Sequence record: MW812342.1
Direction: 5' to 3' (one strand)
DNA: 64,000 nt
Each line of letters starts with the position of its first letter. Within the stretch, counting starts at the first letter, position 1. Of the stretch, positions 9,431 through 64,000 are shown one piece after another. The translations under genes were made by a program, and so were the position numbers. Below the pieces are notes generated by a model. It did no database searches. It saw nothing but the letters and a program-made list of their open reading frames with translations, and was not told the DNA's origin.

Positions 9431-9461
9431 CTTTTTACGGTTAAGCCCTGTGTTATGTAGA
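9431..9461 (+). promoter_or_regulatory. Putative middle-class phage promoter CTTTTTACG-N14-TATGTAGA
   Basis: Both boxes identical to, and spaced as, 17948-17978; upstream of the uvsX operon. Confidence 0.7.
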
Positions 9462-12261: not shown

Positions 12262-12986
12262 GAACAGGACGTCGCTATCTGGTAGATATAGATACACTTT
12301 TCGACACCCGCTTAGGTTGGGCGAAGGTCATTGCACCTGAGGCGTTAGAGAAACTCGAGTTAGATGCTTTCCGTAAACGTCACACCGATATCTGGGCAGA
12401 AGCGATTGGTATCCAAAACTGGTCTGAACAACTCAAACAACGTGACAAACGCGCGTTGTTCATGTCAGACCCGACAGAGTTTCTGTTGGGTTTGAAGAAT
12501 CAGGTGCTCGTTGACTTGACCACATTAGTAATGTCGTCGCCGATTGACCGACCGACTGTTACGATTAACATGTGGCCTTACACCGACCTCACGGCTGAGC
12601 AATCGGACACGTTCTTACAGAACTTCCGTCAGCTGTACAACGAGGTTAAGGTGGACATGGTCTATATCGATCACAAAGATCTTTCTCCCGGACGTCTCGA
12701 CAGCATGTGGGACATCTGGTACATGTTCGACTGGTTTAATTGGGTCACTGTCCACGCGGGAAATTTTGCGAAAAAAATACCCCAGTTTAAAATCCACCCG
12801 CCAGCGTTGCTGACGGACGGACTTACGACTGAGGCGATTGAAGCGATAGAGCGCGATGGGGTGAACCCGTTTAGCGCATTGACACGGTTCATGGAAGAAC
12901 TGGTCACTATCGATCCGGTGGATGCCCGGCTGTATTCTATTCTTCGTCCGCTGAACCCCCAGGACGAGCAAACGCCACAGCCATAA
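12258..12986 (+). CDS. Conserved phiKZ-like protein with HAD-like N-terminal DxD motif
   Basis: YLVDIDTLFDTRLG at the N-terminus; ATGA-coupled to beta-C. Function uncertain. Confidence 0.6.
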   Translation: MRTGRRYLVDIDTLFDTRLGWAKVIAPEALEKLELDAFRKRHTDIWAEAIGIQNWSEQLKQRDKRALFMSDPTEFLLGLKNQVLVDLTTLVMSSPIDRPTVTINMWPYTDLTAEQSDTFLQNFRQLYNEVKVDMVYIDHKDLSPGRLDSMWDIWYMFDWFNWVTVHAGNFAKKIPQFKIHPPALLTDGLTTEAIEAIERDGVNPFSALTRFMEELVTIDPVDARLYSILRPLNPQDEQTPQP

Positions 12987-13401
12987 TGGCATTCACGTCA
13001 ATCTTTTCGCCAACGGGTGCCAGCTCGCCTTCTTTGTGTTCCTGTTTAGGGACGTTAGGAAGTGCGGGTTGGTACCCGGTGTTTTCTTCGTTGTTATCGT
13101 CGTGTCGTTGGATACGCACACCCGGACGGCCCAGCACGACGGAGTTCAGTGCATTGGCCACGTCTTGTGCAGCCCCGGCGGTTTTCTGTGCCGCTTCGGC
13201 ACGACGCTTACCGAGGATTTGCCTGTCGACACCCGACAGCATTTTCTCAAGGGAATTGACGAGGTCTTTGTCTTTATGGACGTTCTCGTCTTCCATAATG
13301 AGGTTAGCCACGCGAATACGGGCTTGGCGGGTTTGGCGGAGAAGCGACTCTTCGTCATCAACATCTCCGTCGAAGGCTTGGTACTTCACTTCTTCGCTCA
13401 T
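12937..13401 (-). CDS. Conserved hypothetical protein
   Basis: 154-aa ORF with an upstream GAGGA RBS on the minus strand; 3' end overlaps the convergent gene by 50 bp. Confidence 0.7.
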   Translation of the reverse strand: MSEEVKYQAFDGDVDDEESLLRQTRQARIRVANLIMEDENVHKDKDLVNSLEKMLSGVDRQILGKRRAEAAQKTAGAAQDVANALNSVVLGRPGVRIQRHDDNNEENTGYQPALPNVPKQEHKEGELAPVGEKIDVNAIMAVAFARPGGSADEE

Positions 13402-47608: not shown

Positions 47609-48145
47609 ATGAACGAAATGATGAGTCCAATTACCAATGGGGCGCTACCGTGTACGTTGTCCCGTGAAGAAATCATTGCCCGTGTTGGTTTGCTGGCAGA
47701 AATCCACATTCGTGGTTTGCTCTCTTCTTTGACCTTACCCGAATTCACGGAGATTGCTGAGTACCCGGTCGAGATCATGACCTGCACCGCTAACGGTTAC
47801 CAGCGCTTCTTATCTGAAACCACCGCGACCATCATTCAGAAAACCGCTGGGTTCATTCTGCGTTACAAATCCGCGCTGGTCTATGAGCTGGGTGAGAATG
47901 TGATGAATGTGCTGGAAAAAGAGCACATCAAGCTGAACGGTTCTGACTTAGCCAAACTCGAAGGCGGTGACAAACACCTGTTGACCCTCTGGACGGTTGC
48001 TAACCCGACCCTGTCTGACGTTGCCCCTTCTTCGCGTTACGATGTCTTTGCCACCTTCTTGTTTATCAGCCATGTCAAGTGGTTGGTTATCCGACTGGAA
48101 GCAGAAGGTGAGAAACCGGCTGCCGTACCAGAACAGAAAAAATAA
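47609..48145 (+). CDS. Hypothetical protein
   Basis: 178-aa ORF ending at a bidirectional terminator. Confidence 0.7.
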   Translation: MNEMMSPITNGALPCTLSREEIIARVGLLAEIHIRGLLSSLTLPEFTEIAEYPVEIMTCTANGYQRFLSETTATIIQKTAGFILRYKSALVYELGENVMNVLEKEHIKLNGSDLAKLEGGDKHLLTLWTVANPTLSDVAPSSRYDVFATFLFISHVKWLVIRLEAEGEKPAAVPEQKK

Positions 48146-62604: not shown

Positions 62605-62610
62605 AAAACG

Positions 62611-62637
62611 GGGAGCTTCGGCTCCCTATTTTTTTTT
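62611..62637 (+). terminator. Intrinsic terminator, UUCG loop
   Basis: GGGAGC-TTCG-GCTCCC plus long T-tract. Confidence 0.9.
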
Positions 62638-62734
62638 GTTTTTTGTTGTCCGGCGGTGATGTCCCGCCTGAAATTGTACACTTTTTAACCATGGGGCAAA
62701 TTCGCTCTAAAACGGTTTCTGAGGTGCCTCATTA

Positions 62735-62929
62735 ATGACCCAGTACACTTGGGTTCCCACTACCCCATTCGTGCAGCAGGGAATCGTACAGCGCGAAATT
62801 GGACGGGTTGCAAATCGGTTTCCGGGTGCAGGGCCGACGGCGCGACCGCCGATGCCGATCAAACGTTGGGGTGCGCTTGCGCGTTTTCAGGATCAAATAC
62901 GGGAATTCAGGGCAAACGAATCTTCGTGA
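62735..62929 (+). CDS. Possible 64-aa small protein
   Basis: GAGGTG about 9 nt upstream of the ATG; no homology cue, may be spurious. Confidence 0.3.
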   Translation: MTQYTWVPTTPFVQQGIVQREIGRVANRFPGAGPTARPPMPIKRWGALARFQDQIREFRANESS

Positions 62930-62959
62930 GTTTGGCTGAATTTGGTTGTTTTTTAACCA

Positions 62960-63280
62960 CTCACTCTCCCCGGCTCCTAGCCGGGATCGAGATCGACTTA
63001 ATTTAAAAATTTTTATTTTAAAAACAATCACTTAAACCAGATCCTGCCCCCGATCCTGAACCCCCTCTGGGGTTCAGTTAAAAAGTCCTTTCATTATACG
63101 CGTGCACGCGCACGCCATTTCCTACAGGATCTTTTAAAAGAATTAATAATATTATTAAATATATATATCCCGTAGGGATAATATTAATAATTAAATATAT
63201 ATAAACCCTACGGGTTTTAAATAACTAACGCGCGTGATCCTTATTACGAGATCTGATCCGGGAACCGGGGATCGGGGGTA
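62960..63280. other. Origin-like non-coding locus: AT-rich core, nested inverted repeats, GATC cluster
   Basis: AT-rich 63132-63230 core; CCCGTAGGG (63169-63177) and its reverse complement CCCTACGGG (63206-63214); CCCCCGATCC (63047-63056) / GGATCGGGGG (63269-63278); nine GATC in 62985-63273. Confidence 0.55.
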
Positions 63281-63284
63281 AGTC

Positions 63285-63310
63285 GAATTACAAGTTTTCC
63301 CAGTTCTATG
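63285..63310 (+). promoter_or_regulatory. Putative middle-class promoter GAATTACA-N14-TATG
   Basis: Same TAC-N-N14-TATG geometry as 1603, 9431 and 17948, but no gene start within about 30 nt. Confidence 0.45.
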
Positions 63311-63722
63311 CACGACGAACCAAACGCTTGCCCGAATCATCCTCGGGCCTTTTTCGAGAATCCACGATGCGGGTTCTGGACAAAGCCAGCGGGACAGCCT
63401 AACACTTCCCAACGCGTTTCAGGTTTCGGTCAGCGACTCGGACTTCGCATTCCGACGAGACCGGTACCGTGGTAGCCTCACGGGAGACTCACCGCTTTCG
63501 GGCCGTCACCCGATACGACGCCATGGAACTTACCCGTGGCCTGCGTGTGAACTCTCCCTGGGGTGTGACCAAATTCGAATTCGGCTTGCGGCCGATACCC
63601 GTACACGGTTTAGCCCCGTGTACACCGGAGTAATCTCCAACGGGAGGTTGATCCACATCTTGGCGGCTCGGAAAGACGAGAGGGGGATGTCCCCACGCTG
63701 TGAAGCGCTGGGATGTCGCTGA
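63310..63722 (+). ncRNA. Candidate structured ncRNA or long 5' leader
   Basis: Series of short stable hairpins (63330-63348, 63521-63539, 63601-63623, 63632-63649, 63692-63712 with GTGA GNRA loop) between a promoter motif and the RBS of 63749. Confidence 0.35.
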
Positions 63723-63748
63723 ATTAAATTCTAACCAGGAGTGTGACC

Positions 63749-64000
63749 ATGTCTGCCATGACGCTTGAAGAACTCATGCCTACCCGTATGCCCGACCCAG
63801 TGACTTTCCCACGCAACGGTGAACCGGTGCCTGTGGCCGACGTGGTTGCTTGGTTACGCACCGGTTGCCCGAATATCCACCACCTGACCGCCGCAGTCCT
63901 CGAAAAACATTTCGAGACGGTTGCCTTCCAGCCATTCCCCAACGAACTGGCTATGGCCGCTGTGGGTAAACTCAAACCCGAATGTGGGAATTACCACATC
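63749..64000 (+). CDS. Hypothetical protein, partial (runs off right edge)
   Basis: Not in ORF track. RBS AGGAG, ATG 63749, stop-free to the window end (MSAMTLEELMPTRMPDPVTFP...). Confidence 0.75.
   Translation, partial: MSAMTLEELMPTRMPDPVTFPRNGEPVPVADVVAWLRTGCPNIHHLTAAVLEKHFETVAFQPFPNELAMAAVGKLKPECGNYHI

Follow-up and report, generated by a model that had tools for sequence, protein, structure and literature searches.

A probable noncoding RNA gene with its own phage-type promoter, conserved among SPN3US-like jumbo phages

INTRODUCTION

Among the RNAs encoded by phages and prophages are the large ornate GOLLD and ROOL, both Rfam families (cryo-electron microscopy preprint 10.1101/2024.12.08.627333). 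In phage phiKZ, the late promoter is TATG with the G as position +1, while the middle promoter is AAanTTACc centered near -24, TATG being found in some middle promoters as well (PMC4666361). Here, we describe an interval of Erwinia phage pEa_SNUABM_10 (MW812342.1, 238,920 bp), a Machinavirus of the SPN3US-like jumbo phages, that resembles both. The stretch analyzed (the window, 64,000 nucleotides [nt]) is the last 64 kb of this genome, with 100% identity up to the record end. Window positions are record positions minus 174,920, and the window stops at the arbitrary end of a circular record. Positions 63285-63748 are devoid of any annotation in MW812342.1, and the open reading frame (ORF) that begins at 63749 is coding sequence 00001, joined across the record ends. 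We propose, with a probability of roughly 0.8, that 63310-63723 is a conserved structured noncoding RNA gene with its own phage promoter; the figure applies to the gene and its promoter and to no particular role. The RNA is ca. 415 nt long in the window and ca. 490 to 530 nt in relatives, where extra upstream modules are added.

A previous reading of the window from its letters (the sequence-only reading) had offered as one option an undescribed large phage RNA transcribed from an orphan phage promoter. The comparative evidence supports this option, as the promoter is conserved, the fold covaries, no Rfam family matches, and the interval is noncoding. Neither the RNA nor the noncoding block was described in Rfam or in the literature that we could search, which covers few subscription journals; that literature also yielded no transcript data for SPN3US-like phages.

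RESULTS AND DISCUSSION

Covariation supports a conserved fold

The z score of the folding energy was -3.16 for the + strand and -1.06 for the - strand. By blastn, the region is 70 to 78% identical in Erskinevirus and Seoulvirus, each time within a large unannotated gap. Among close relatives, stems are found with double compensatory changes, i.e., GCCCGA/UCGGGC becomes GCCCAG/CUGGGC, CCAUGG/CCGUGG becomes UCGACG/CGUCGG, and CGGA..UCCG becomes CGGUGG..CCACCG. An alignment of 17 phages contains hairpin stems that are wholly swapped with their loops unchanged, such as those of H7 (helices are located below). RNAalifold, applied to the 3' domain of 13 sequences, gave 54 pairs, 21 of them with double changes, and these included two long-range helices. 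Pairing was then counted in 33 distinct sequences and compared with shuffled and slid controls. Paired cells amounted to 98.0%, versus 86.6% (shuffled) and 28 to 50% (slid); the covariation score was 0.384, a value reached by none of 500 shuffles (0.178), versus 0.05 to 0.07 when slid; and 14 of the 34 pairs had changed on both sides, versus 11.3 and 0 to 5, respectively. Helices beyond the covariance model described next (H5, H7, H8, and the 5' helices H1 to H4) form in each clade with differing sequences, and H1 to H8 covary. The predicted fold is thus supported by covariation, and the frequent G-U pairs and GNRA loops place the RNA on the + strand.

With R1, a covariance model built on the 3' domain (257 positions), exactly one copy was recovered per genome. 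Uninterrupted full-length copies scored 147 to 234 bits, the copy of pEa_SNUABM_6, which carries a deletion, 122 bits, and the split copy of Wellington and Kwan appeared as two partial matches of 104 and 35 bits. No extra copies were detected with R1 in the window or in the examined loci. The stems that had been listed from the letters are all present, namely, CCATGG/CCGTGG, GTACACGG/CCGTGTAC, AATCTCC/GGAGGTT, CGCT-GTGA-AGCG within CCCA/TGGG, and the hairpin GCCCGA/TCGGGC followed by CTTTTT (63330-63348), and all five are preserved by compensatory changes in relatives. A comparison with Rfam and a search for covariation had been suggested as checks. The second gave the pair counts and the covariance model above, and the first gave no family: inside 63285-63748, Rfam 15 (including group I and II introns, RNase P, tmRNA, 6S, GOLLD, ROOL, HEARO, and OLE) had no match at E values up to 10. 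The homologous RNAs of five relatives had no Rfam match at E values up to 1, and ARAGORN found no tRNA or tmRNA.

A putative phiKZ-type promoter upstream of the RNA

The promoter-like motif GAATTACAAG-N13-TATG is located at 63283..63310 on the + strand, and its phiKZ middle-type geometry predicts G 63310 as the start. The spacing reported earlier is correct: TAC (63289-63291) and TATG (63307-63310) are separated by 15 nt, and the next ribosome-binding site (RBS) and start codon are AGGAG at 63737-63741 and ATG at 63749. At the sequence level, both parts of a phiKZ-type promoter are recognizable. TATG with G as +1 (63307-63310) is found as TATG or TGTG at the same place in relatives, and the box GAATTACAA (63284-63292), centered ca. 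-22 from G 63310, is kept in them as (A/T)(A/T)TTAC. There are 10 exact TAC-N15-TATG matches in the window versus 3.7 +/- 1.9 expected, and 0 of 100 shuffles reached 10. When TGTG was also allowed, the copies at 9436, 17953, 45275, and 47552 lay 25 to 36 nt before an ORF start and a fifth, at 47864, lay 15 nt before one; the distance of 27 to 33 nt given by the sequence-only reading is therefore roughly right. The remaining exact matches, all within genes, are probably due to chance. A copy of the motif precedes the homologous RNA in five of the six clades (the window clade, Caitlin/ChrisDB, Erskinevirus, Seoulvirus, and the Wellington clade, in which the spacing is two bases longer).

Architecture of the RNA

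All the features that follow are on the + strand. The structured RNA would extend over 63310..63723 (ca. 414 nt), beginning at the predicted start and ending with GCUGAA, where conservation stops; its 5' end is derived from the promoter and its 3' limit from the end of conservation and from a second promoter found near GCUGA in other clades. MAFFT and RNAalifold aligned the hypervariable H1 poorly, and for this reason, the 5' domain was folded clade by clade. This domain consists of H1 to H4. A 20-nt leader that begins at 63310 is followed by H1 (63330..63348), the GC-rich hairpin GCCCGA/UCGGGC that abuts a U-run. Among close relatives, H1 shows two double compensatory changes (GCCCAG/CUGGGC) and a 1-nt loop indel, and a hairpin of 6 to 10 bp with a mostly different sequence occupies its position in 11 of the 12 representatives folded, the 12th being cut by the extraction limits. 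In H2 (63349..63385), CUUU-U-UCGAGAAUCC pairs with GGGUUCUGGA-C-AAAG, so that the U-run after the first hairpin forms its basal 5' strand. CUUUUUCGA(G/A) and GACAAAG are preserved in most clades, the upper helix covaries, and in an uncultured clade with genomes of ca. 222 kb (222-kb clade), a longer U-run is paired with a longer A-run. H3 (63389..63415) displays the conserved loop CAGCCUAACACU (63395-63406), with a core, CUAACAC, that is invariant except in the Wellington clade, on a stem with compensatory changes between clades (GGGA/UCCC, ACGUU/AACGU, and CGCA/UGCG). H4 (63422..63468) has the base GGU/ACC and a variable inner stem-loop, with much bigger insertions in other clades and the compensatory CGGUGG..CCACCG in pEa43 and pEa6; the register of its base is uncertain because it overlaps the long-range helix.

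The 3' domain, which holds P(b) and H5 to H8, is closed by this long-range helix, CCGU (63467..63470) with GGCG (63662-63665), in which 97% of the cells are paired and the fourth pair is U-G, U-A, or C-G (17/9/5); at its end, the fold has a nearly invariant 28-nt core and a hairpin with a GNRA loop. P(b) (63471..63570) joins GGUAGCCUCA (63471-63480) to UGGGGUGUGACC (63559-63570) and encloses H5 and smaller hairpins. Four of its pairs have double changes (e.g., U-A to C-G in 11 sequences), and it is retained in the Wellington clade with further ones. H5 (63520..63540; GCCAUGG/CCGUGGC, loop AACUUAC) has undergone three compensatory changes in pEa43, and its stem is well paired in five distinct versions across clades; it is weaker in Seoulvirus and Erskinevirus, with an internal mismatch, and its loop and flanks (GAACUUACC) are conserved in every clade but Wellington. 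H6 (63581..63595) is UCGGCU-UGC-GGCCGA, with two doubly changed pairs. The stem of H7 (63601..63623; GUACACGG/CCGUGUAC) is fully replaced in other clades (CCCAGCG/CGCUGGG and GUCUGCG/CGCAGAC), which carry there the conserved loop GUGUAGAAC. H8 (63627..63654) pairs GGA..AAUCUCC with GGAGGUU..UCC, the 3' strand being Shine-Dalgarno-like; it covaries between clades and is absent from the 222-kb clade. The junction core UCUUGGCGGCUCGGAAAGACGAGAGGGG (63658..63685; 28 nt), including H9 (CUCG 63667-63670 with CGAG 63677-63680), is near-identical in Seoulvirus, Erskinevirus, Machinavirus, and Wellingtonvirus, across which the head protein is only 64 to 78% identical. Within these four genera, the core varies only at one position (G, C, or A) and in its hairpin, whose loop has A or G or an extra nucleotide; three positions differ in the 222-kb clade. 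The terminal helix H10 (63683..63720) has double changes in 8 of its 13 pairs, several G-U pairs, and a loop that is always GNGA (GUGA, GCGA, GGGA, or GAGA; GUGA at 63700-63703 here). The tail GCUGAA ends at 63723.

Within H8, 63643-63655 reads GGAGGU-U-GAUCCA (GGAGGUGAUCCAA in Asesino), a very long Shine-Dalgarno-like strand, though paired. It is the reverse complement of the 3' tail of enterobacterial 16S rRNA. The best predicted 16S pairing falls at H8 in 15 of 17 sequences, a conserved position, but with energies only modestly better than those of shuffled sequences and with H8 missing in one clade; we treat it as no more than a lead.

Distribution and evolution of the locus

Exact-core scans and blastn located the RNA in Seoulvirus (SPN3US, the SPFM phages, Proteus phage 7, and Escherichia coli phages), Erskinevirus, Machinavirus, and Wellingtonvirus, in IMG/VR and metagenome contigs of those groups, and in the divergent 222-kb clade. 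Five pattern matches in bacterial genome contigs were all discarded as chance. There was no similarity or antisense complementarity to E. coli sequences, the only match being a mislabeled jumbo-phage genome. This is NZ_CP173450.1 (221,873 bp; positions 147801-155872 are locus L062), labeled as a plasmid of an E. coli isolate from human urine. The record is syntenic with SPN3US-like phages, encodes the RNA in a divergent form, and most likely represents a jumbo-phage genome included in a bacterial assembly. Like it, four IMG/VR contigs (L063, L065, L066, and L068) belong to the 222-kb clade. The protein encoded upstream (459 amino acids [aa]) is a virion protein found throughout the Chimalliviridae. 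In the nearest outgroup, Erwinia phage Phobos, gp247 and gp1 are ca. 50 nt apart at the syntenic site, with no noncoding block. Around the homologous gene of this phage and of AH04, Ea35-70, and PhiEaH1, no match to the RNA model was obtained.

The window clade has the smallest version of the RNA. Other clades have large insertions in H4 and a conserved element, UGAUUUUGUUUUAGUAUGUUC, after H3. Seoulvirus and Erskinevirus possess an additional upstream unit of ca. 230 nt with its own promoter and terminators, which in the Caitlin clade is fused to the RNA. Further structured modules are found upstream of the RNA in SPN3US (ca. 295-530 of L024), in L010 and L012, and in L007 (ca. 2200-2430). 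They repeat a pattern of GC hairpin, U-run, and (C/G)GAG that suggests internal duplication, and the noncoding block of SPN3US reaches ca. 1.7 kb.

Two changes affect the RNA itself. pEa_SNUABM_6 (L006) lacks 138 nt (63473-63610) between two TAGCC repeats, and with them P(b), H5, H6, and half of H7; the shortened copy may represent a natural mini-variant or reflect an error in assembly. In Wellington (gp293; 1059-1568 in L059) and Kwan (gp291; 1059-1568 in L060), an HNH gene is inserted in the RNA just 5' of the core, beside a degenerate target duplicate, while sister contigs have no HNH gene. In L028, the insertion lies at 12363-13012. The HNH gene matches HNH PHROGs with E values down to 1e-29, and its Pfam HNH_3 score, 24.6 bits, is just below the cutoff of 24.8. 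It resembles a free-standing homing gene that has entered a highly conserved site, and not an intron. At the start of the cassette in L028 (12379-12444), there is a subthreshold match to the Rfam family int-alpA (31 bits versus a gathering score of 35.8).

Upstream of the RNA and of the AT-rich element described below, the block at 62640-62990, which follows a terminator (62610-62640), shows nucleotide conservation in distant clades (e.g., CCCAGTACACTTGGGTTC and CGATCAAACGTTGGGGTGCGCTTGCGCG). It includes an annotated 64-aa ORF (62735-62929; phrog_27207), and several distant clades have no gene annotated there. Either a genuine ORF or a further stretch of noncoding sequence may be present here.

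Alternative explanations

A protein-coding gene of the gp279 type, read from the ATG of TATG, has the following in its favor: ORFs of 131 to 137 aa are annotated from it in Parshik and Machina as gp279, which overlaps the RNA (3706-4101 of L003 and 2206-2619 of L004, respectively), a Huxley ORF is listed under the same match, and a PHROG family exists (phrog_27350). In addition, the window has a stop-free stretch of ca. 138 codons, and the 138 nt missing from pEa_SNUABM_6 are a multiple of three. However, the ORF from that ATG measures 55, 137, 131, 137, 113, and 91 aa in the six close relatives, and three of them (the window, pEa43, and pEa6) have an extra nucleotide in the H1 loop that puts the frame out of register after 28 nt. 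Eight alignment columns have indels of 1 or 2 nt, variable columns are spread evenly over the codon positions (16/14/16), and the ORFs that other clades place over the same RNA are different ones, on either strand, or are lacking altogether, despite the nucleotide conservation and the compensatory pair changes. These frameshifts, indels, and flat variation rule out a conserved frame with codon bias, gp279 and phrog_27350 are most likely spurious, and the probability of a coding gene is close to nil; synonymous-site conservation in a protein gene had been named as one outcome that would overturn the RNA, and the interval proved not to be protein coding. A 20-codon ORF within the core (UUG to the UGA of GCUGA) was also rejected, since a 1-nt insertion breaks its frame in the SPN3US clade, the tetraloop contains a stop in two clades, and the core has no variation of the synonymous-site type. 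If noncoding, the interval could still be a cis-acting leader or attenuator, i.e., the 5' untranslated region of the downstream operon, with a fold (H1 and the U-run included) that controls read-through or translation. H1 with CUUUUU, 20 nt past the predicted start, scores as terminator-like, and the arrangement of GC-rich hairpin and U-run is kept in all clades; there is no terminator after the RNA, the downstream genes are on the same strand, and the next gene of the window clade has its RBS no more than 20 nt beyond the RNA. Against this, a second promoter of the same type, which would bypass a leader, is present after the RNA in Erskinevirus, most Seoulvirus genomes, Wellingtonvirus, the 222-kb clade, Caitlin, ChrisDB, pEa43, and pEa6. 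In most clades, it starts within ca. 10 nt of GCUGA, 61 to 78 nt past the core start, and it stands at the usual 25 to 35 nt before the start of the next gene, whose identity varies among clades. This second promoter indicates a separate gene rather than a leader, and the leader option of the sequence-only reading is weakened accordingly. The hairpin and T-run that it had called attenuator-like do exist and do resemble a terminator, but they are a conserved part of the fold: in every clade, the U-run is paired, at the base of H2, with an A-run located downstream, and the stem sequences of H1 are different in most clades, so that we read hairpin and U-run as an architectural element. The typical terminators of this phage have longer U-runs, the per-clade folds revealed no conserved alternative (antiterminator) pairing for H1, and 400 to 530 nt with an invariant core are far larger than known attenuators. 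We consider a leader unlikely, although H1 and its U-run may terminate some transcripts. TTTTTCGAR was tried as a general terminator motif and dropped, with a single further occurrence in the window, on the other strand.

The HNH gene that interrupts the RNA in Wellington and Kwan raises the question of whether the RNA is a mobile or intron-like ribozyme, derived from a self-splicing intron if not one itself; group I introns carrying HNH genes are known in related jumbo phages (reviewed in PMC13282480). Nevertheless, no group I or group II intron (Intron_gpI included) was matched at E values up to 10, there is neither the core fold of a group I intron nor a pair of joinable exons but a promoter upstream and a promoter or RBS downstream, and the HNH gene, confined to Wellington and Kwan, is inserted in a joining strand with a degenerate target duplicate, as is typical of free-standing homing genes. 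An intron origin is accordingly very unlikely. Somewhat more weight can be given to an origin-associated transcript, in which supercoiling behind the polymerase would activate a neighboring AT-rich element or the RNA would prime or organize replication or packaging. The element in question (62985-63285; core 63120-63230) is palindromic and carries TTAAATATATATA-N2-CC-N-TA-N-GG as two direct repeats; on its flanks are GC-rich CGCGTGC boxes and 9 GATC sites in 286 nt, versus a window mean of 2.2 per kb. It occurs once in the window and is retained, 50 to 100 bp ahead of the promoter, by every clade with the RNA, while the outgroup Phobos has neither the noncoding block nor a match to the RNA model in the flanks; it could be an origin or a P1-pac-like site. 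As the element always accompanies the RNA, is GATC rich, and is unique, a role in replication or packaging is conceivable. Yet transcription is directed away from it, whereas in the priming of T7, T4, and ColE1, the unwinding or transition site lies downstream; transcriptional activation alone needs no covarying 400-nt fold with an invariant core; the co-occurrence could reflect shared descent; and GC skew gives no origin signal here. This explanation remains a minor possibility. The proximity of the palindromic, GATC-rich element might also suggest that the stems act as DNA signals instead of RNA, in the form of cruciforms or single-strand hairpins at an origin or packaging site. This is highly improbable, since the other strand would have A-C mismatches in place of many conserved G-U pairs, the tetraloops are GNRA, the significance of the fold is strand asymmetric, and the promoter points into the interval.

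Several points weigh against a separate RNA gene with its own promoter. The upstream copy of the promoter was not found in the 222-kb clade. In the window clade, the second promoter is degenerate and the RBS comes directly after the RNA, which makes cotranscription with the next gene likely and a leader role possible there. The resemblance of H1 and its U-run to an intrinsic terminator implies that most transcripts could end ca. 45 nt from the start. The 138-nt deletion in the viable pEa_SNUABM_6 and the HNH insertion mean that the intact RNA is either not strictly essential or tolerant of large changes. Finally, the start, 3' end, and stability of the RNA are all predicted from sequence.

Proposed role and significance

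Taking the RNA gene as the preferred explanation, we envisage that the phage multisubunit RNA polymerase would start at G 63310 from the phiKZ middle-type promoter (63283-63310). The absence of a terminator and the new promoter in most relatives suggest that the mature RNA is probably released by processing of a read-through precursor. The product would be a stable folded RNA acting in trans, with the invariant core as its functional center, which probably binds a conserved partner or catalyzes a reaction. Its predicted size, long-range helices, GNRA loops, invariant core, and homing insertion fit a trans-acting RNA with a partner or catalytic center. Provided that the RNA is real, a trans-acting ribonucleoprotein, architectural, or catalytic RNA is the role that we favor, at slightly under even odds; some other role is quite possible, one in replication or packaging at the adjacent AT-rich, GATC-rich element is a lesser possibility, and that of a cis-acting leader would be unlikely. 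More tentatively, this could be a new class of large catalytic or ribonucleoprotein RNA of the nucleus-forming SPN3US-like jumbo phages, whose core would be an active site or a binding platform for a phage or host machine, e.g., the replication or packaging apparatus at the adjacent AT-rich, GATC-rich element or, via the Shine-Dalgarno-like strand of H8, the ribosome, and important enough to have become the target of a homing endonuclease.

SPN3US-like jumbo phages are models of giant-phage assembly and candidates for use against Salmonella and fire blight. A real, conserved folded RNA without a family points to an unknown RNA-based function in them: an RNA of 400 to 530 nt with ribozyme-grade conservation has so far been left unannotated or called as small ORFs, and a step of the life cycle based on it has escaped examination. 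The system is tractable, with natural variants (the 138-nt deletion, the HNH insertion, and clades without H8) and an invariant core open to mutation. The core sequence can also serve as a marker for these phages in metagenomes and bacterial assemblies.

Comparison with known systems

Phages encode stable RNAs beyond the usual classes, such as RNAs C and D of T4, which are cotranscribed with tRNAs and processed, and the pRNA of phi29. These are much smaller, similarity to the present RNA is not to be expected, and the packaging role of pRNA is tied to the phi29-type motor. ColE1 RNA II and the origin transcripts of T4 and T7 also have a promoter beside an AT-rich element, and ColE1 RNA II is likewise long, with folding that matters for its function. 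In those systems, however, the origin or unwinding element follows the promoter or is located at the 3' end of the RNA, whereas here the element (63120-63230) is upstream and the 3' flank holds an RBS or a promoter. The phiKZ middle and late promoters share with this locus TATG at the start and an AAanTTACc-like box centered ca. 22 to 24 nt upstream (PMC4666361). They differ in that they were defined in a Pseudomonas phage, while here start sites are predicted and the promoter precedes an RNA gene and not an mRNA. Noncoding RNAs beside phage promoters have been described in the Chimalliviridae, in phiKZ and 201phi2-1, but they are <250 nt, arise mostly from premature termination in 5' untranslated regions, lie upstream of a tail gene, and are unrelated in place and sequence (PMC11512511). 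GOLLD and ROOL come nearer. The present RNA has no sequence or structure match to either, and its hosts and phage type are different (nucleus-forming jumbo phages of Enterobacterales). As in GOLLD and ROOL, the RNA is >400 nt long, multijunction, phage encoded, and orphan in function, with many helices that covary strongly, and it is located upstream of tRNA genes in relatives, where a tRNA-Trp gene is found 0.9 to 1.2 kb downstream (the window ends 250 nt after the RNA). Without homology to them, it thus has its closest known kind in these two orphan large phage RNAs.

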